Both the position numbers and the translations under genes were made by a program. Positions 11,128 to 29,352 of a stretch of 64,000 nt of DNA are shown in pieces. Positions within the stretch are counted from its first letter, which is position 1. Every line of letters starts with the position of its first letter. The DNA is from Entomortierella parvispora E1425 (taxonomy: Eukaryota; Fungi; Mortierellomycota), in assembly GCA_020891255.1 (NCBI GenBank), contig BQFW01000001.1, positions 1,798,001-1,862,000 on the forward strand, written 5' to 3'. The notes beneath the pieces were generated by a model that was given only the letters and a program-made list of their open reading frames with translations, did no database searches and was not told the origin of the DNA.

Positions 11128-11950
11128 CCTGCTATCCAATAAATCTCAAAAAAAAAAAAAAGGGCGAAAGGTTCATGTTCATGTGCTTTTCTTTTGACTT
11201 TTCAGCCTGCTTAACTCTACATGATGGTCTTCTGAATACTACGTGCTGATTATCGCATGCGTCGAAGCGAGTAAGAATACAGAGCGGATCAGAAGGTCCC
11301 GATCTGCTTCAAGAACAAGGAGACGCTTCTACAATCGAGACTAACCTGTTTTCAGATCAACATAGTGGTCGTCGACATACGAGACACAATTCGCTGCTGG
11401 CGACAACACGAGAAGGGCCAAGTAACTCAATGCACTCACTTGATCACTGCATCCTCAAAGAGCTCGAGTTTGAGATTGCGTGTTGGAAGCAGTTTCCCAA
11501 ACCTCAGCTTTACGCGACGGACTGGAGATACCACCGACAACCATATCCCCTTCAAACCTAACAACCGAACACTAGCCCCAGCCCTACATTATACGCTTGC
11601 TCTAGAATCCAGTCAGGCCTCGCTTTTTTCTCCTTGGATTCTGATTCTGGCAGCAATTGAGCAGAACAAAGGCTGGATTTGCATGCAAATGCAATAAAGT
11701 GCCGTGGATGGTCTAGCGCAGTCTGTCTGTGTTCTGCTGCTGATCCTCAACTGGAAGCGATACTCGATTATCCACGCGTGTGCCTACAAGCCTATTATTA
11801 AGGGCAAAAAGACTGGCTGAAGGAGCTGACACGGGCCGACCTATTTGATAAGCAAGTTGCCCAGGTTGTCAAAAAAAAAAAAAAAAAGATGATCCTGCAG
11901 ACATGTTGCAAGATCCAGGACTCAGGAGCTTCATGAGCAGTGGCAAAAAG

Positions 11951-12024
11951 TGTTTGTACTCGGACTTGAACCGAGGACCGTCTGTGTGTTAGACAGACGT
12001 GATAACCAACTACACCATACAAAC
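11951..12024 (-). tRNA. tRNA-Val (AAC)
   Basis: Reverse complement GTTTGTATGGTGTAGTTGGTTATCACGTCTGTCTAACACACAGACGGTCCTCGGTTCAAGTCCGAGTACAAACA folds as a cloverleaf with GGTTCAA T-loop and anticodon AAC. A T5 terminator follows (11945-11949). Confidence 0.95.
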
Positions 12025-12143: not shown

Positions 12144-12175
12144 GGACCAGGCTTGAAACTTGACATCAGCAACAT

Positions 12176-12258
12176 CCGAAAATAGCTCAGTTGGTAGAGC
12201 GGGAGACTGTAGTTTGTCTGTTATCTCTAGGTCCCTGGTTCAAATCCGGGTTTTCGGA
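12176..12258 (+). tRNA. tRNA-Tyr (GTA) with a ~10-nt intron
   Basis: Acceptor stem CCGAAAA/TTTTCGG and A-box TAGCTCAGTTGG. Anticodon GTA at 12209-12211, intron ~12213-12222 at the canonical 37/38 position, B-box GGTTCAAATCC. Confidence 0.95.
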
Positions 12259-12264
12259 TTCATT

Positions 12265-12292
12265 CCGCATCCGTTGGATGCGGTTCTTTTTT
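12265..12292 (+). terminator. tRNA-Tyr 3' trailer: perfect 8-bp hairpin followed by a T6 Pol III terminator-like tract
   Basis: CCGCATCC-GTT-GGATGCGG (12265-12283), then TTCTTTTTT; this is the first run of 4 or more T after the gene. Confidence 0.7.
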
Positions 12293-12294
12293 GT
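12286..12294. repeat. Left 9-bp target-site duplication of the MULE (CTTTTTTGT)
   Basis: Identical 9-mer at 21909-21917, immediately outside the right TIR. Confidence 0.95.
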
Positions 12295-12989
12295 GGATTT
12301 ATCTATTTGACAACCCAGGTTGTTCGTTTTGTTTGACAACCCACCAGTCACACTTTGGAAAATTGCATGGAAACCTGGGTTGTCAGATAGTGAGCTCCAC
12401 CTCGTTCGCAACAAGCCCGCAAACCCGAAGTTGCCGCCCGAAACCGCCTCCATGGTACCAGCCATCGGACACGGCTTTGTGGACATCATTGTACTCTGCC
12501 TTCCATGACTCGCCAACGACCTGTCCTCCTGTGAGGGGACAGATCACCAGCCCGTTGGCACCAGCCCCGTTGGCATCGGCTCAGTCGGTCGTCACTGCCT
12601 ACCAAGGAGTGTTACACTGCGCTTCGATCAAGGCCTGGACTCCAATTATTAAAGGCCCTCACTCGGTCGTGGTCGCAGTTGCTCATCAACTTATCCGTCG
12701 TCAGGATAGGGATACTCTTGCACGTATCCGGAAGACACGCGGCGAGGTTACTATTGCCTGGGAGAAGACTCAAGGCATCCGCTCCAAGATGAAGAAGCAA
12801 GCACAGCGAGGCCAACCTTGGAACAATGCATTTGCTACGATCTTACCACCAGACACCTGCCAATGCGGTAAACCTCACTCCGGCCACCACCAAGGCCGTT
12901 GCCCAGATGCCCAAGATGACCTTAAGCTGGCAGACCAGCGCTTACTGGCTGGTGTGCGTGGCCAGGTTCATATATCGACACTTTTGTAA
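12291..12989 (+). other. Long open frame inside the left end of the MULE, with no upstream ATG; possible cargo gene or gene remnant
   Basis: Stop-free for 232 codons. The 3' half looks protein-like (basic helix, CQCGKPHSGHHQGRC), but the first in-frame ATG is late (MKKQ). Confidence 0.3.
12295..12344 (+). repeat. MULE left terminal inverted repeat
   Basis: GGATTTATCTATTTGACAACCCAGGTTGTTCGTTTTGTTTGACAACCCAC matches the reverse complement of 21859-21908 at 46/50 positions. Confidence 0.95.
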
Positions 12990-13237
12990 CATTTTATTCT
13001 TTATTAAACAGCGATGAGTCGTGGCATTTGTTGCGCGGGGATTCGGGCTTCATTGTTAGTAGTTTGTTCTCGCACTTCGCTTCACTGTCTCGACATAGCA
13101 AATAATATGTAAAAAAAAAAAAAGTCCACCTCGTCCGCCATAGCATCAGAAGATATTTCGCAAGAATATTTTTATTGAATAATTGCGAACATAACCTGTT
13201 ACACTTCGTCGACGTGGGATTGCGCACTATCTGTCTT

Positions 13238-14090
13238 TCACATGTCCTCGTCGTCCTGGCAGGGGCTGACCATGTAAGATGGGTCACTCTGAAGGCCTTT
13301 GAGTGCTCGCTCGCTGACTTCCAACGTGAAAGATCGATCGCGCTTGAGTGACATGAGGTTTCTAACCTCGTCCCTTGTAAGCTTCTGCTCGGCCATTATC
13401 TCTGCTTGATTGTTTTGATGGCGATTGTAGAACACTCTCTGTTCCTCAACAGCTGCTCGCTGCATCTCAATGGCAGCTCGCTGCTCCTCGAGGGCCGTGC
13501 GCTGCTCCTCTAAGGCCAAGCGGTTATGTTCAGCGATGCTGCGCTGATGTGCCACAGCTTGTTCAGCATACGAAGCGGTGAAGGTGTTCAGAAACGACAA
13601 CTGAGACTGGGTCATGCTCTCGACGAGCTTCGCGCTCTGTCCTGTGAACGTCTCCAGGAAGGCTTGATGTTGCTCAATCAACTTTTCCTCCAGAATGCTC
13701 CCCGACGCTGCGCTCCGCTACCACCAGGGCCGTTGAAGGAGGCGCCGGCGCAACAATAACGCCATTGCCATCGCCTGCACCACCTGCACCAGGAGGAGGT
13801 GGATGTGCGATTGCATTTAGGGCGGCGTCCCTGGCAACGGCACAGTAATGGTAATGGCGATGGATCGAAGAGTTAAGGGTGAACGTCAGGCCACAGTAGC
13901 AGACGAAATCCATGTGTTTTGTGGGAATTCGACTAAAGGTGACTTGTCGATCAGTGTACCCGCACATGAACTTGATGGGGTTGTCGACGTGATACCCTGC
14001 AACATGGTTCTTCTGATTTTTGGTCTTGGGTTCGGCAGGGGGGAGGAGACCTAGCGCGCAATAGCCGTAAGTGCAAGCACCACGAGGCAT
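13238..14090 (-). CDS. MULE cargo gene: two putative zinc fingers plus a coiled coil; split by a 1-bp frameshift at 13700-13703
   Basis: ORF 13674-14090 has C-x4-C-x17-H-x4-H and C-x-C-x12-H-x3-C; ORF 13238-13681 has an EEQR-repeat coiled coil. Removing one base from the 4-nt homopolymer at 13700-13703 gives a single 283-aa ORF. Confidence 0.6.
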
Positions 14091-14247
14091 GTTGGAAGAG
14101 GTGAGAACGATGAGGAGGACAAGATACAGAACTGGATGCCGCAAGTACACATATTTATACATGTGGGAGTTGCTGACACAAGAAGCCTGGATGTACGAGT
14201 CAGTCGAGTCAGTCCCTTTGTTTCGAACCAGAAGAACATGTCGGACC

Positions 14248-17200
14248 ATCATCCTCTATGACCTAGGGGATGTCTGTCAATGGCATGCATACAGAGGGCA
14301 AAATGTATCTTTTTTTTCTTTTGGCCGACCATGGTACACGTACCGTCTTGCGAGTCCTTGCGAGTCGCCAGAAGTCCCAATTAGGAATGGTCTACTGTTG
14401 CATGCAAAGGCTTTTTTTTTATTTGACCGAGGGTTGACCGGGGGTAGATCAATACAAGAGGAAAGAAACACAGCTGATACCCGCTCCAGTCTTCTGATCC
14501 AGACAAGGTCAGAGCCCACTGGACTATCATCCTCTATGACCGAGGGGATGTCTGTCAATTGCATGCATACAGAAGGCAAAATGTATCTTTTTTTTTCTTT
14601 TGGCCGACCATGGTACACGTACCGTCTTGCGAGTCCTTGCGAGTCGCCAGAAGTCCCAATTAGGAATGGTCTACTGTTGCATGCAAAGGATTTTTTTTTT
14701 TTATTTGACCGAGGGTTGACCGGGGGTAGATCAATACAAGAGGAAAGAAACACAGCTGATACCCGCTCCAGTCTTCCGGACCGGACAAGGTCAGAGCCCA
14801 CTGGACTGTCACCCTCTATGACCTAGGGGATGTCTGTCAATTGCATGCATACAGAAGGCAAAATGCACTTTTTTTTTTCTTTTGGCCGATCATGGTACAC
14901 GTACCGTCTTGCGAGTCCTTGCGAGTCGCCAGAAGTCCCAATTAGGAATGGTCTACTCTTGCATGCAGAGGATTTTTTTTTTTTTTTTTTGACTGAGGGT
15001 TGACCGGGGGTAGATCAATACCAGAGGAAAGAAACACGGCTGATACCCGCTCCAGTCTTCCGGACCGGACAAGGTCAGAGCTCACTGGACTATCATCCTC
15101 TATGACCTAGGGGATGTCTGCCAATTGCATGCATACAGAAGGCAAAATGCACTTTTTTTTTTCTTTTGGCCGATCATGGTACACATACCGTCTTGCGAGT
15201 CCTTGCGAGTCGCCAGAAGTCCCAATTAGGAATGGTCTACTCTTGCATGCAGAGGTTTTTTTTTTTTTTTTTTGACTGAGGGTTGACCGGGGGTAGATCA
15301 ATACCAGAGGAAAGAAACACGGCTGATACCCGCTCCAGTCTTCCGGACCGGACAAGGTCAGAGCTCACTGGACTATCACCCTCCATGACTTAGAGGATGC
15401 CTGTCAATTGCATGCATACAGAAGGCAAAATGCACTTTTTTTTTTCTTTTGGCCGACCATGGTACACATACCGTCTTGCGAGTCCTTGCGAGTCGCCAGA
15501 AGTCCCAATTAGGAATGGTCTACTGTTGCATGCAAAGGCTTTTTTTTTTTATTTGACCGAGGGTTGACCGGGGGTAGATCAATACAAGAGGAAAGAAACA
15601 CAGCTGATACCCGCTCCAGTCTTCCGGACCGGACAAGGTCAGAGCTCACTGGACTATCATCCTCTATGACCTAGGGGATGCCTGTCAATTGCATGCATAC
15701 AGAAGGCAAAATGCACTTTTTTTTTTCTTTTGGCCGATCATGGTACACATACCGTCTTGCGAGTCCTTGCGAGTCGCCAGAAGTCCCAATTAGGAATGGT
15801 CTACTCTTGCATGCAGAGGTTTTTTTTTTTTTTTTTTGACTGAGGGTTGACCGGGGGTAGATCAATACCAGAGGAAAGAAACACGGCTGATACCCGCTCC
15901 AGTCTTCCGGACCGGACAAGGTCAGAGCCCACTGGACTATCACCCTCTATGACCTAGGGGATGTCTGTCAATTGCATGCATACAGAAGGCAAAATGCACT
16001 TTTTTTTTTCTTTTGGCCGATCATGGTACACGTACCGTCTTGCGAGTCCTTGCGAGTCGCCAGAAGTCCCAATTAGGAATGGTCTACTCTTGCATGCAGA
16101 GGATTTTTTTTTATTTGACCGAGGGTTGACCGGGGGTAGATCAATACAAGAGGAAAGAAACACAGCTGATACCCGCTCCAGTCTTCCGGACCGGACAAGG
16201 TCAGAGCTCACTGGACTATCATCCTCTATGACCTAGGGGATGCCTGTCAATTGCATGCATACAGAAGGCAAAATGCACTTTTTTTTTTCTTTTGGCCGAT
16301 CATGGTACACATACCGTCTTGCGAGTCCTTGCGAGTCGCCAGAAGTCCCAATTAGGAATGGTCTACTCTTGCATGCAGAGGTTTTTTTTTTTTTTTTTTT
16401 GACTGAGGGTTGACCGGGGGTAGATCAATACCAGAGGAAAGAAACACGGCTGATACCCGCTCCAGTCTTCCGGACCGGACAAGGTCAGAGCTCACTGGAC
16501 TATCACCCTCCATGACTTAGAGGATGCCTGTCAATTGCATGCATACAGAAGGCAAAATGCACTTTTTTTTTTCTTTTGGCCGACCATGGTACACATACCG
16601 TCTTGCGAGTCCTTGCGAGTCGCCAGAAGTCCCAATTAGGAATGGTCTACTGTTGCATGCAAAGGCTTTTTTTTTTTTATTTGACCGAGGGTTGACCGGG
16701 GGTAGATCAATACAAGAGGAAAGAAACACAGCTGATACCCGCTCCAGTCTTCCGGACCGGACAAGGTCAGAGCCCACTGGACTATCACCCTCTATGACCT
16801 AGGGGATGTCTGTCAATTGCATGCATACAGAAGGCAAAATGCACTTTTTTTTTTCTTTTGGCCGATCATGGTACACGTACCGTCTTGCGAGTCCTTGCGA
16901 GTCGCCAGAAGTCCCAATTAGGAATGGTCTACTCTTGCATGCAGAGGATTTTTTTTTATTTGACCGAGGGTTGACCGGGGGTAGATCAATACAAGAGGAA
17001 AGAAACACAGCTGATACCCGCTCCAGTCTTCCGGACCGGACAAGGTCAGAGCCCACTGGACTATCACCCTCTATGACCTAGGGGATGTCTGTCAATTGCA
17101 TGCATACAGAAGGCAAAATGCACTTTTTTTTTTCTTTTGGCCGACCATGGTACACATACCGTCTTGCGAGTCCTTGCGAGTCGCCAGAAGTCCCAATTAG

Positions 17201-17436
17201 GAATGGTCTACTCTTGCATGCAGAGGTTTTTTTTTTTTTTTTTTGACTGAGGGTTGACCGGGGGTAGATCAATACCAGAGGAAAGAAACACGGCTGATAC
17301 CCGCTCCAGTCTTCCGGACCGGACAAGGTCAGAGCTCACTGGACTATCACCCTCCATGACTTAGAGGATGCCTGTCAATTGCATGCATACAGAAGGCAAA
17401 ATGGATCTTTTTTTTTTTTTGGCCGACTATGGTACA
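14248..17436. repeat. Tandem array of ~11.3 copies of a 278-284-bp unit inside the MULE
   Basis: Unit starts (CCTCTATGAC/CCTCCATGAC) at 14253, 14531, 14813, 15097, 15380, 15661, 15944, 16223, 16507, 16789, 17068 and 17351 (partial). Units differ mainly in T-tract length and a few linked substitutions. Confidence 0.97.
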
Positions 17437-17691
17437 TATATGGTATATACACATAGACTGCAAATAGTGTTCGGGGTTTTGAGTTACTCTACTCGAAGCG
17501 GAGACAATGAAACGTTGGAACTTCTGATATAAAGCTACGGCAGTAGGCACCGACGAAGATTCACAAGAATCTTATAACCTCAGCCGAGCCATACTTCTCT
17601 GTACGGGGTTTGTTGTCTGTCTCGTACCTACTGAAGTTCTTTGGAGCGTTTTGCTGATACAGTCTATTTTGGCATTTAAAAAAAATATAGG

Positions 17692-20600
17692 ATGTCGTCA
17701 GCTGTTAATCATCTTGTGGACGACCCAGGGACGTCGAAAGAATCGAAAGTGATGTACAGCCAATACTGGCAAAGGCTACAAACTGGCAAGGCACTGCTGA
17801 AAATCCCCCTTCCGATTACTAAAACTTGTACCGAGGTCGAGGTCATATATGAGCTGCCACCGCCCAAAGAGAGAATATTCGAAGCCAGAGTTGCAATTCT
17901 CAAAACGCTACCTTCGCAAGATGTTGTTATGAAGGCCAACGAAATGCTGCGTAGGTTCAATAAGAGAAAACATCGGCTGCTCTTTTCGTTTAGGTGTCAA
18001 TTGGCAAAACTCCTGACCAGCACAGTTACAATATGTTTATTTATAGTTGGTGCGTCAGTGTCTCAAAAGGCGTGGGGCATTCGCATCCATGGCGTTGGAG
18101 ATTTCTCGCATGCCTCGGTCAAAATCTTACTCGGCGCGGTGCAGACGCACACTTTCATCATTCAAGCGATGGAGATGTTTAACTGGATCGATGCCGTCTC
18201 GGATCGCAACTTTGCCGATTGGATCCGCGACCTAATTTCCAATACCTCAGGCATCATCCATTGGGAGTTTCAGCCAACTTCTGAGGCGCCATTGGCCATT
18301 GGAAACGCGTTTTGTCTCATGAAGGAGTGCTTCATTAATGACGAGGTCGTGCGCACGGTGTTGCAGCTCTTTGCCGAGTCGTATGGGGCAAGCAATCGAT
18401 ACCTTTTGATCACACCTACTCAACTCAACAACTGGCGAAAGAATCTATACCTGGAATGGAAAAGGGACGAGCTCCGAAGCGGGCGAGTTGAAAAGGCATT
18501 CTCGATTGTTTATATGCCATCTCATTGGGGTGCGATCGAGGTCGATTTCGTTAAATGTCAGATCTCATTTGGGGATTCCCTCTCTTATCCCACACCTCGT
18601 GAGGCCTGTCAAGCGATACGACAATGGATAAGATGCTGTGGGCTTGATATAGATCGTTGGAGCAGCCACATCGAGCATCTCGATGTCCCACGGCAACCAG
18701 CTAGCAGTGGATCGTGCGCTGTCAACTCCATCAATGCTGTCGAGAGGAGAATGAATCCTGAAATAGAACTCTGGACTCACGAACGATCTGCACATCATCG
18801 ATTGAGGCTTTTGAAGCTGGCCACCGGCTACAACAAGGTGAATCTTTGCTTGTTTGTAACGTATGACACAAATCCCCCGTTGTCCGACCACCGTAGATTA
18901 ATACTCAATTCATCTAGATCGAACATGCAGCACATGCTTCTCGAGGCCAAGGGGTGGCAAGGGTGGCTGATCTCGATATTGTGTCGGCAAATGATCCGGA
19001 CATAGTTACAACTGACTCAATCATCACAGACAACGCCATTGTAAAAGTCGCAGTCAATGAAGAGATACCTACCGAAGATGGGGTCACTACAGCTGTAGCC
19101 GATGCGGCTATTCTAGAGGAGACCATTACAAGTGATGCTTTCTTAAATGTCGGACCCTCTTCATGTGGGGCCAGGGCAGAGGCAGCGGCCGCCGCCGTAA
19201 CCATTACAAGTGATGCTCTTGCAGCTGACGGACCCTCTTCATGTGGGGCCAGGGCAGAGGTAGCGGCTGCCGCCATAGCCATCACAGGCAACAGTGCTGA
19301 AGAGGGTGACAGCCTGCCGTGGACACCTTATATCGGCCAGTTGCATGAAACTCTTGAAGAACTAGAAGAAAAACTCCACGCATGGGCTCGCAAGCAAGGA
19401 TTTTTCCTGAGAAGGATGCAGTCCAGACTCAAGAGGATGAATGGCCAAAGTCCCCGAGGTAGGTACTTAAAATCTGCAGGTTGTTTTTTTTTCTCTATGG
19501 ATCAATTCTTTTTGACACAAGTATGGTTTGCCGATGAATAGTAATTTTTGGTTGCAAGAAGGCTGGAAAACATGTTCCGCAAAAGAATGTTGACCCAGAT
19601 AAGCACCGCAATTGCACCTCCAGCCGCGAGTGCTGCCCATGCCAAATCGTTGTTCGGTCTCCAAGGGAGTTGTTTCCACGTTGGCGTATTACTTCCCTTG
19701 TCACAGACCACTGCCACGAACTCAAGAAATGCGACATCCTGGAGTCCAACCAGCGTGATAAACGACTCAGTGCCGAAATGCTCCAGCTTATTACCACCCA
19801 TGCAGGCAAATGTGATCCCAAGTTTATTGTTTACATGCTTCAACATGAATGGCCAGACAAAGCGTTCGATCTTCGGACAGTCGCAAATGCCATCCAGAAA
19901 GCAAAAAACAGTGCTCACATCGGTGGCTCCGAGGCTGCAGAGCTCCACAAGATTCTACAGGATAAAACGCGCAACGATAAAGACTGGTTCTTTGCTACCG
20001 ATCTGGATGAAAATGGCCGGCTCAGAAGGATGTTCTGGATGAGCCCTTCTCAAAGATACCTCTACCGACGCTACCGCGATGTTGTCATCAGCGATAACAC
20101 TTACAAGACGAACCGTTTCGGCATGCCTCTTAATGTTATAGTCATTATCGACAATGCAGGAAAGAGTCGTTTGGTAGGGTGTTCATTGGTTTCTGGGGAA
20201 TCAGTGGAGGACTATGAGTGGATTCTAGAGCAACTGTTGGCGGCAAGCGACAACGTATATCCTCATATCATTTTCGTCGACGAAGATCCCGCTATGGAGG
20301 CCGCTTGTGCCACAACTATAAGCAAGACCACCGTCTTGAACTGTATCTGGCATCTGCGACAAAACCTGAACAAAAACCTCCACGGAGCGCTAGGCAAAGA
20401 CTGGAATGATTTTATATCAGCTTTTTGGACAACCCGAAACGCGCTTACGGCCTCCGATTTTGAGCGTAGATGGTCAGAGCATGTTGCGGTCTTTGGTGTT
20501 GATAAGCCAAAGATTGAGGGTTACCTGAAAAGGATAAGCGAGAAGCGCGAGCACTGGGCTTGGCCTTGGGTTGGGACAAGATTTACCGCCGGAATGCAGT

Positions 20601-21770
20601 CGACTCAGCGTGTGGAGAGTATGAATGCGGCCATCAAAAGGGCCGTCAATGGCAAGACGTCCCTTCCAGCACTGTTCGAGGCAATTGAAAAGAAGCTATC
20701 AAATGAAGCCCAGACTTCAAAGTATATTCTCTACAAGACGGATACAACGGTTGATCCCGCAACGTCGACGTTTGTTCAGCAAATGTTTGCCGATGTTATC
20801 GATGCAAACAATCGCTATCTTGGCATCGCAGCAAAAAGTCAGATGAAGTTAGAGATGTCGCGCTCTGTTTTGTATCAGTCCAATCCACACACAGGTATAG
20901 ACGCCTGTGCTCCACGATCAATCGAAGGAGGTGATTTCGAGGAAGTAAGTACTTGTACATCATTCCAATACCCAAGCGCAATCCTAAGACCAGATAGAGG
21001 TACTAAGCCGTTATTCTTCTCTTTGTCCTTAGATTGAGAGATCGTCAAAAGACGATCGCGAAATGAGCTCTCTCCAGTCCATCCAGACAATCGTTGGTTC
21101 TGATCGAATTGTACAAATCTTCGACGTGACGTTCCGCTTGGACACGGAGCGAAAGTCACTTCAGCACATACTTTTACTGGCTGATGGCTCGTACATTTGT
21201 ACTTGCCTCCTCCTCCAAAACAGCGGATTTGTATGTCGACACTATTTCCATCTGATGCAAGTTAGTGACAGATGCAAGTATCATGTCAGGCTTATTCCGA
21301 TGCGGTGGTTTAAAGAAGAACTGCAGGACCTAACAGATCTTGATCTCTCAGGGGCGTTTTTGAGCGCAAAAACGCAGAAGACGGTCGCTCAGGTGGGGAG
21401 TGCAGAGGGAGAGCCTGCTTCTTCTTTCATGAGCGATATCATGAAGGTTTTCCCCTCAGTGCCATCCCTGTCGGGGGTTGATAAACGCAACCTTTCCAAA
21501 AAACGCCGCATTGGAGAGATATCTGGCCTGATGAAGAATATCATGGACACCGTGAACTCCAATCCAGAAGTATTCGAAACAGTTAAAGATGGCCTAAACC
21601 GTGTCATTGTGAGGGGGGCAGGCGAAGAAGGTATGAAGGATCCTCACTATACAAAGACGAAGGGCAGACCGAGGACTTCTCGGATAAAGAGTAGCATGGA
21701 GACAAAAAAAAAATCAACGAAGTGTGGAGTGTGCAGCGGGGAAGGTCACAATTCTAGACAGCACTCATAA
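17692..21770 (+). CDS. Ulp1/C48 SUMO-protease::FAR1-MULE DDE-SWIM transposase fusion; predicted 5 exons, ~1243 aa
   Basis: Ulp1 motifs FINDEVV, HW, GDSL and Q..SSGSC. FAR1-type domain (WARKQGF...FGCKKAG...CCPC...WRI...DHCH). DDE motifs SDNTYKTN, VDEDPAM, CIWH and TQRVESMN. SWIM CTC..NSGFVCRH; C-terminal KGRPR and CxxCxxxxH. GT-AG introns 17951-18046, 18838-18917, 19459-19541 and 20945-21032 keep one frame. Confidence 0.85.
19122..19277 (+). repeat. 78-bp tandem duplication in the protease-transposase linker
   Basis: ACCATTACAAGTGATGCT...GGACCCTCTTCATGTGGGGCCAGGGCAGAG at 19122 and 19200; encodes TITSDA....GPSSCGARAE.AAAA twice. Confidence 0.9.
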
Positions 21771-21858
21771 AAATAAACGTTTGTTTGGCAACCTGGGTTG
21801 TCAATTGAGGAATGACAGGTGGGTTGCCGAATAAAAAACGAGACTAACCAAATATAGA

Positions 21859-21908
21859 GTGGGTTGTCAGGTAAAACGAACAACCTGGGTTGTCAAATAG
21901 ATAAACCC
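21859..21908 (-). repeat. MULE right terminal inverted repeat
   Basis: Reverse complement GGGTTTATCTATTTGACAACCCAGGTTGTTCGTTTTACCTGACAACCCAC. Confidence 0.95.
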
Positions 21909-21917
21909 CTTTTTTGT
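21909..21917. repeat. Right 9-bp target-site duplication of the MULE (CTTTTTTGT)
   Basis: Identical to 12286-12294. Confidence 0.95.
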
Positions 21918-29103: not shown

Positions 29104-29243
29104 ATGCCTAAATGCCCAAACTTCATAATCATAATCTAGCACCACCGAAATAAAAAAAAGTCAGAGTCTAGTCAGCTTTCTATGTTCTTCGTTGGTCTTC
29201 GGGTACGAGAGAAAAAAATGAGAAAATGTGAAAAAGAGAAGAC

Positions 29244-29317
29244 CGCTCCCGGGTGGGCTTGAACCACCAACCTCCTGATTAACAGTCAGACGCGCTAACC
29301 AATTGCGCCACGGAAGC
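29244..29317 (-). tRNA. tRNA-Asn (GTT)
   Basis: Reverse complement GCTTCCGTGGCGCAATTGGTTAGCGCGTCTGACTGTTAATCAGGAGGTTGGTGGTTCAAGCCCACCCGGGAGCG forms a cloverleaf with anticodon GTT. Confidence 0.95.
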
Positions 29318-29352
29318 AGGGTGAAGATCTCATTGGATGAATTTCACGTGGA

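Follow-up and report, generated by a model that had tools for sequence, protein, structure and literature searches.

Examination of a 64,000-nucleotide stretch from the Entomortierella parvispora E1425 genome (Fungi; Mortierellomycota), positions 1,798,001 to 1,862,000 of contig BQFW01000001.1 in the 19-contig assembly GCA_020891255.1, revealed a Mutator-like element (MULE) of 9,614 bp that carries two genes, one for a transposase and one for an accessory protein, on either side of an internal tandem array. The whole stretch is called the window below, and positions are counted from its first letter; the element occupies 12295-21908. All of the 11 independent copies of this family lie a short distance 3' of a tRNA gene, a link that the preliminary description of this DNA had missed, and it is in this tRNA-directed integration by a DNA transposon, together with a conserved accessory module, that the main interest of the element lies. 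Taken as a whole, the observations are probably best explained by an autonomous and recently active MULE of E. parvispora E1425, whose choice of site is linked to RNA polymerase III (pol III) and whose array is a cis-region shared by its two genes.

Integration of the element beside tRNA genes

The element is real, intact and very young. Its ends are terminal inverted repeats (TIRs) of 50 nt, at 12295-12344 on the plus strand and 21859-21908 on the minus strand, which are 92% complementary by inverted-repeat comparison and are enclosed by a 9-bp target site duplication (TSD), CTTTTTTGT, at 12286-12294 and 21909-21917; the boundaries given in the preliminary description are confirmed. The first 32 nt of the TIR have no further match within the window. 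The motif TGACAACCC occurs three times at each end of the element and never in the array: two of the left copies are inside the TIR and the third is at 12377-12385, and at the right end a subterminal copy lies at 21795-21803. Copies in the genome were located by using annotated proteins as handles, and 11 independent ones were obtained, a minimum for the family, including that of the window (L010 is identical to the window). All 11 have 50-bp TIRs and 9-bp TSDs, as in the MULE superfamily (TSDs of 9-11 bp), and they lie at different loci with different duplicated sequences. These TIRs and TSDs show movement by a cut-and-paste mechanism. Seven copies measure 9.6 kb, one 8.5 kb (L011, with about four array units fewer) and three 4.3-4.6 kb. 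The full-length copies differ from the window by scattered single-base indels and by no substitution at all.

In the window, the element begins 36 bp past the 3' end of a tRNA-Tyr(GTA) gene predicted by ARAGORN at 12175-12259 on the plus strand. Every one of the 11 copies likewise follows the 3' end of a tRNA gene at a distance of 24-69 bp, and the genes concerned code for tRNAs of many kinds: Tyr (two copies), Gln, Glu (two), Pro, Val, Cys, Ile (two) and Leu. Such a narrow range of distances combined with indifference to tRNA identity is the pattern of elements targeted to pol III genes. The end bearing the accessory gene faces the tRNA gene in three copies and the transposase end does so in eight (binomial p = 0.23). 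The first T-run past the tRNA gene is kept in all 11 gaps, the insertion lying beyond it, so that the tRNA gene and its terminator are left intact. With 192 tRNA genes in a genome of 38.66 Mb (PMC8759367), the probability that all 11 insertions would fall by chance within 70 bp downstream of one of them is about 9e-39.

A preference for T-rich DNA, a selective loss of the insertions made elsewhere, or both, might bring about such a distribution in place of targeting, and seven of the 11 TSDs are indeed T-runs on the tRNA sense strand. We regard this explanation as very improbable. Runs of at least seven T or A are about 15 times commoner than tRNA 3' flanks, even in samples rich in tRNA genes (261 runs in the 194 kb sampled, 18 of them 3' of tRNAs), and four of the 11 TSDs are not T-runs, so a preference for T-runs is insufficient. 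All the insertions are on the 3' side, within a span of distances of no more than 46 bp, and the absence of substitutions among the copies leaves little time for selection to have acted. Directed integration beside pol III genes is, we infer, the best reading of these data. The site would be set by contact with the transcription complex of pol III or with its chromatin, and not by the DNA sequence, as is the case for Ty3, TRE3 and Skipper-2, and the flanks of tRNA genes may offer a safe harbour in a compact genome.

Further tRNA genes were observed in the window. A tRNA-Val(AAC) gene at 11950-12024 is divergent from the tRNA-Tyr(GTA) gene and 150 bp away from it; the element stands behind the latter only. 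A tRNA-Asn gene lies at 29243-29318.

Transposase gene and its Ulp1-like domain

The transposase gene is on the plus strand and was spliced by hand from four open frames (17692-18837, 18918-19458, 19542-20944 and 21033-21770), joined by three GT-AG introns of 80, 83 and 88 nt, into a product of 1275 aa. Exon 1 holds a Ulp1/C48-like domain at about 18061-18837, delimited with a profile of homologues. Exon 2 comprises a linker with an in-frame repeat (78 bp x 2.1, 19122-19286) and the start of a FAR1/WRKY-type domain, the remainder of which is in exon 3 together with the MULE DDE domain placed by Pfam at about 20081-20365. A SWIM motif, CxC-x9-CxH (21198-21242), and a C-terminal CCHC knuckle (21723-21761) were read from the sequence of exon 4. 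The introns are supported only by the public AUGUSTUS model and by the share of sampled words of 17441-21908 present in sequencing run X2, described below (0.84, the exon share of that region being 0.857 before junction words are subtracted). The public protein on this copy (GJJ68155/GJJ76279, 1164 aa) matches the model without gaps, its residues 6-1164 being residues 117-1275; it comes from an AUGUSTUS annotation guided by cDNA hints, for which an RNA library of this strain was used (PMC8759367).

The Pfam search identified PF10551 (MULE) at 5e-20 in the open reading frame 19670-21037, along with PF00872 at 1.8e-5. On the annotated protein, the MULE match reached 1.2e-19 and FAR1 (PF03101) 6e-10, with 40.2 bits against a cut-off of 28.1. 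The protein has the DDE domain of MULE/MURA-type transposases, and the association of a FAR1/WRKY-GCM1 domain, found by Pfam, with a SWIM motif, recognised by reading the sequence, is that of the eukaryotic MURA/FAR1 clade; the Pfam SWIM model gave no match on the transposase protein.

Neither exon 1 nor the window protein alone matched a Pfam Ulp1 family at E < 0.1. An exhaustive search retrieved 157 homologues. Peptidase_C48 (PF02902) was matched by 16 of the 36 that were sampled, and a profile built from these 36 retrieved yeast Ulp1 (1EUV) at 5e-12 and SENP1 at 7e-9. His278 (SHWGA, 18520-18534), Asp295 (FGDSL, 18568-18582), Gln335 (PRQPA, 18688-18702) and Cys342 (GSCAV, 18709-18723) correspond in the alignment to HW, DS, QQ and C of 1EUV, the positions of the His-Asp-Cys triad and the oxyanion-hole glutamine. 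H278, Q335 and C342 are near-invariant in the family, and D295 stands between a near-invariant G294 and an invariant S296. A Ulp1/SENP-type domain with intact catalytic residues is predicted from these alignments, an assignment that holds at the level of the family. The preliminary description was correct in reading a single Ulp1::FAR1-MULE-SWIM gene here.

Close relatives were found in Mortierella, in Dissophora and in soil metagenomes, and the fusion of Ulp1, FAR1 and MULE domains recurs in four longer relatives, among which are a Tilletia protein and another family of E. parvispora. Between the Ulp1 and FAR1 domains, the linker is prone to repeats across the family: in a relative of 53% identity, L018, a 33/66-bp x 12 repeat occupies the same place (794-1194 of L018). 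C48 Ulp1 domains encoded by, or fused to, DDE transposases have been described in Mutator and Ginger1 elements of hydra, lancelet, Arabidopsis (Kaonashi), melon and rice (PMC2836005). The present element differs from these in the position of its Ulp1 domain, N-terminal to FAR1-MULE-SWIM, and in its host, a member of the Mortierellomycota. Our literature search returned no description of this fungal Ulp1-MULE clade, nor of any link between Ulp1 domains and target choice.

The domain could itself be the targeting module. In yeast and mammals, tRNA genes are reported to be enriched in SUMO and in its ligase Siz1, and pol III itself ranks among the major targets of SUMO (PMC6128692), which makes a SUMO-reading Ulp1 domain a testable, if speculative, candidate. 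At tRNA genes that are active, it would recognise pol III, TFIIIB or TFIIIC in SUMO-modified form, the accessory protein and the array then forming a separate module for the control of expression. We give this proposal a small probability; if it were true, the element would be a SUMO-guided DNA transposon.

Accessory gene, tandem array and non-autonomous copies

The accessory gene lies on the minus strand, its coding sequence (CDS) extending over 13238-14090. As assembled in the window, the frame that opens with the ATG at 14090 is broken at about 13700 and continues in a different one. The protein of a paralogous copy, EMPS_02794 (P0002), runs without interruption over 283 aa. When Logan contigs of the two runs from the source sample were aligned to the window, 100% of the depth in each run lacked one letter at 13700, and the X1 contig showing this omission is otherwise identical to the window over 12941-14240. 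The assembly was produced from Nanopore reads with Pilon polishing (PMC8759367). Because the extra base is missing from 100% of contig depth, the frameshift is an assembly error, a single spurious base, and the gene is intact at 283 aa. The preliminary description had reached the right product by proposing a repair to 283 aa; what it repaired was a fault of the assembly and not of the DNA. Decay of this copy was also considered and ruled out: the full-length copies differ by single-base indels only, and the read-based contigs do not have the extra base.

The product consists of a Cys/His N-terminal region followed by a helix of about 140 residues. Nine Cys/His positions are kept across genera (C6, C11, H29, H34, C42, C65, C67, H79 and C83), and the spacing F-x-C-x-C-G-x2-F-x7-R-H-x3-C resembles the C2HC variant of the classical zinc finger. 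No Pfam family was significant on the protein. In AlphaFold models, computed for the protein alone and with four sequences, the 127 N-terminal residues had a predicted local distance difference test score (pLDDT) below 50, and the C-terminal half formed one confident helix. The look-alikes of the protein in the Atlas, with a best score of 0.85, are all C2H2-like and serve as leads only. A zinc finger is plausible from the residue spacing. Of the divergent zinc-finger/coiled-coil gene announced by the preliminary description, the gene, its Cys/His region and its helix are real, and the zinc finger amounts to the nine conserved Cys/His positions.

In a sister element, recovered on soil-metagenome contigs (L002-L005), the accessory gene has 73% nucleotide identity and is decayed by two frameshifts and one stop; comparison of the two genes over 238 aligned codons gave a ratio of nonsynonymous to synonymous substitution rates (dN/dS) of 0.24, with dS about 0.88. 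Full-length homologues with 39% identity over 98% of the length occur in Linnemannia elongata, where one homologue sequence is present on 9 contigs; the homologues there include KAK5798811, KAK5799203 and KAH7048819. The known relatives of the protein are confined to the Mortierellaceae and to metagenomic proteins. These comparisons show that the accessory gene is a genuine component of the element and under purifying selection.

Run X2, which is labelled 'DNA?', consists of short contigs, about 24 Mb in total, with Illumina adapters at their ends. Over 13164-14111, its summed contig depth, a poor measure of expression, reaches 46,000-251,000; on 12295-13163 it is 87 and on 14112-14240 it is 0. 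This is not the behaviour of genomic DNA. A TruSeq RNA library of the same strain and project exists (PMC8759367), and strand-specific RNA sequencing of the strain is deposited under DRA013164. From this library, the depth profile, the adapters and the share of words given above we infer that X2 is an RNA sequencing library. If it is RNA, the accessory gene appears to give a very abundant single-exon transcript of about 950 nt on the minus strand, with approximate limits at 13164-14111. A minus-strand TATA box (14152-14159) and an AATAAA signal (13171-13176) are present, and the TATA box is kept in the sister element on L002.

The preliminary description had also listed a third orphan frame, on the plus strand at 12291-12989. 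This frame was rejected as a gene and is regarded as non-coding filler: the six substitutions that mark a subfamily of copies there comprise one nonsense, five missense and no synonymous change, and the stretch 12398-13271 is missing from the sister family, whose TIR directly adjoins the accessory gene. Within this left arm, a segment of about 150 bp (12927-13084) has a summed depth 3-8 times above that of its surroundings, and high-depth contigs from other isolates, which do not have the element, match it at 90-95% identity. It looks like a captured fragment of another high-copy repeat.

The array between the two genes extends over 14243-17440 and was resolved by Tandem Repeats Finder into 11.4 copies of a 283-bp unit with 95% matches. 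It lies, as first described, as a 3.2-kb array between two divergent ATGs, 153 bp from that of the accessory gene (14090) and 252 bp from that of the transposase (17692). The units are about 5% divergent and belong to two intermixed variants. Each contains TCCCAATTAGGAATGG, TCAATTGCATGCA, a second TGCATGCA, two GCGAGTC motifs and two T-runs. With one mismatch allowed, the near-palindrome TCCCAATTAGGAATGG was found 11 times and TCAATTGCATGCA 12 times in the window, always in the array. A search of the array against Rfam at E <= 5 yielded chance matches only, with no RNA family and no tRNA-like structure. With these chance matches, and with TGACAACCC never occurring in the array, an origin of the array as a tRNA or short interspersed element (SINE) derivative and a role as carrier of the TIR motif were both rejected.

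Upstream of the accessory gene, the sister family has 320 bp that can be aligned with the proximal promoter, TATA box included, and that contain recognisable copies of the TCCCAATTAGGAATGG and TCAATTGCATGCA cores together with the GACTCGC repeat. This conservation is modest evidence for a cis-acting role of the array motifs. The preliminary description had called for a comparison of array motifs with the accessory sequence in search of co-divergence; it is conservation in the sister family, not co-divergence, that was found. The array would be a cis-regulatory region shared by the two divergent genes, and its conserved palindromic motifs may be sites for a protein encoded by the element, the accessory protein being the first candidate.

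Expansion of minisatellites inside elements is seen in many DNA transposons, and the array might be a neutral minisatellite of this kind, with no role other than that of a promoter spacer. Its two intermixed variants of units about 5% different and the failure to find an RNA family or tRNA-like structure would agree with neutrality, as would the fact that elements have been mobile with 11.4 units (most copies), about 7 (L011) and at most 4.8 (the non-autonomous subfamily described below). We nevertheless consider it somewhat unlikely. The part of the unit bearing the two motif cores is still recognisable in a family whose accessory DNA is only about 73% identical, and several units stand beside the accessory promoter in every copy seen.

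The three short copies share a single deletion, from the array (about 15585) into exon 3 (20596), and also seven substitutions in the left arm. They form a mobile non-autonomous subfamily that has moved at least three times. The seven substitutions all fall within 12524-13131, with none in the 855-bp CDS piece (p = 0.011). Two of the three copies, at different loci, have the same 2-nt deletion in the CDS, which indicates that an intact accessory gene in cis is not needed for mobility; in the third, L001, the gene is intact. In the non-autonomous copy at 7480-11772 of L016, the T-run is separated from the end of the element by five additional bases, GGATT, with which the other TIR also starts, so that the TSD is not clean, and the accessory gene of this copy has a 21-bp in-frame deletion. 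Genes of Gypsy-type retrotransposons (RVT_1, rve) lie less than 10 kb from two of the MULE copies, at 22219-23842 of L010 and 12245-17127 of L013.

Outside this genome, a 16-mer scan of metagenome contigs with the TIR returned at least 120 loci, all of them chance matches in which no more than 15 of the 34 flanking positions agreed, and the known relatives were absent among the matches listed. Nine runs, X3-X11, made from other samples that bear the same species label contained none of the sampled transposase-region words. Strain E1425 may be the only one to have the family, or the isolates behind X3-X11 may be too divergent.

Integration that is strictly targeted and independent of sequence requires a protein-protein tether, and the accessory protein might provide it. 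It would act as a MURB-like cofactor of integration or targeting, with its coiled coil as the bridge from TFIIIB, TFIIIC or pol III to the transpososome; the array would be incidental. The protein is mostly one long helix, as is typical of scaffolds, and its gene is intact in the non-autonomous L001 and is under purifying selection. However, no similarity to pol III factors or to known tethers was found, the sister family has the gene on L002 with no tRNA gene at its visible end, and the Ulp1 domain is an equally good candidate for the tether. We find this role unlikely and retain the accessory protein as a candidate ligand of the array.

Several points weigh against the overall explanation that we favour. 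Targeting is deduced from the distribution of insertions in one genome, and no tRNA gene is present at the sole visible end of L006, L017 and L018 (transposase end) or of L002 (accessory-gene end); insertion behind tRNA genes may be peculiar to this family. In its N-terminal domain, the accessory protein combines a lack of significant family matches with a low-confidence model, and its pairing with the array is that of a candidate only. Finally, the label of X2 and the use of summed contig depth bear on the transcript proposed for the accessory gene.

Comparison with known systems

The preliminary description had likened the element to the VANDAL MULEs of Arabidopsis. In VANDAL21 (Hiun), which encodes VANA, VANB and VANC, the VANC protein binds short motifs accumulated as dynamic tandem repeats in the non-coding DNA of the element (PMC5735166), and the TIRs of VANDALs are degenerate (PMC10398659). 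The two elements are alike in belonging to the Mutator superfamily, in having extra genes and in carrying motif repeats in non-coding DNA near their genes. On the other hand, the element from E. parvispora has a single stable 283-bp array, whereas VANDAL21 has several short and fast-changing repeats; its 50-bp TIRs are intact; its Ulp1 domain is fused to the transposase, where VANDALs have a separate VANB gene; it has no protein of the VANC family; and it is directed to tRNA genes, which VANDALs are not known to be. The VANDAL-like layout stands in its components (transposase, Ulp1-like domain, extra gene and motif-bearing non-coding repeats) and fails on the fused Ulp1 and on the TIRs. That the parallel is architectural, with no homology to VANC, had already been stated, and it agrees with an accessory protein outside all Pfam families.

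By analogy with VANDALs, the accessory protein might bind the array motifs and, together with the Ulp1 activity, keep the chromatin of the element open and its genes transcribed. A conserved and apparently highly transcribed accessory gene does adjoin the array, and the motif cores, of which there are 11-22 occurrences, nearly all inside the array, are kept upstream of this gene in the sister family. Against such anti-silencing stand the lack of similarity to VANC in sequence or domain, a Ulp1 that is part of the transposase and not a separate protein, TIRs that are intact unlike those of VANDALs, and an array that is near-invariant among copies (only L011 has about four units fewer), without the rapid turnover of the VANDAL21 type. 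In addition, copies with a frameshifted accessory gene have still moved. We judge anti-silencing of this type doubtful. The observations of the preliminary description are largely confirmed, and its interpretation is supported only as architecture; a shared cis-regulatory array remains our reading of the repeats.

Another two-gene autonomous Mutator element is MuDR of maize, in which mudrA and the helper mudrB are convergently transcribed from TIRs of about 215 bp. The element shares with MuDR the presence of two genes, the second being lineage-restricted and of unclear biochemical function. Its genes diverge from an internal array, whereas those of MuDR run inward from long TIRs; its TIRs are of 50 bp against about 215 bp, and its accessory protein shows no similarity to MURB.

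With respect to its sites of insertion, the element is closer to retrotransposons. TRE5, TRE3, DGLT-A and Skipper-2 of Dictyostelium are position-specific beside tRNA genes of any identity, with TRE3 and Skipper-2 inserting downstream (PMC5633606). The likeness to these pol III-directed elements, among which are also yeast Ty3 and Ty1, lies in insertion beside tRNA genes whatever the tRNA. They use an integrase or target-primed reverse transcription, whereas the present element is a cut-and-paste DDE transposon, and the distance from the tRNA gene is about 100 bp for TRE3 against 24-69 bp here. Among DNA transposons, Dada has a DDE transposase distantly related to that of MuDR and is tied to tRNA and snRNA genes (PMC3706591). 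The insertions of Dada are made within the small-RNA gene, at one specific sequence, and give 6-7-bp TSDs, whereas the element inserts outside the gene, beside many different tRNAs and with 9-bp TSDs, and its 11 insertions have no target sequence in common. In the literature searched, targeting of tRNA flanks was found only for retrotransposons, with in-gene insertion for Dada, and none was found for a Mutator element.

The element is a fungal two-gene Mutator in which the idea that an element-encoded protein acts on the element's own array, as VANC does, is directly testable, and its Ulp1 domain offers a concrete and testable function for the unexplained Ulp1 domains of many transposases. Its copies are apparently intact and identical, and the strain is culturable, with DNA, RNA and Nanopore (GridION) data available. 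It represents a compact system, made of two proteins and 50-bp ends, for the study of how a transposase reads the pol III machinery, with safe-harbour gene delivery as a possible use. Convergent evolution towards a "safe harbour" has a textbook example in position-specific integration next to pol III genes. If the present reading is true, this convergence on tRNA flanks would extend to a new class of elements, the cut-and-paste DDE transposons.

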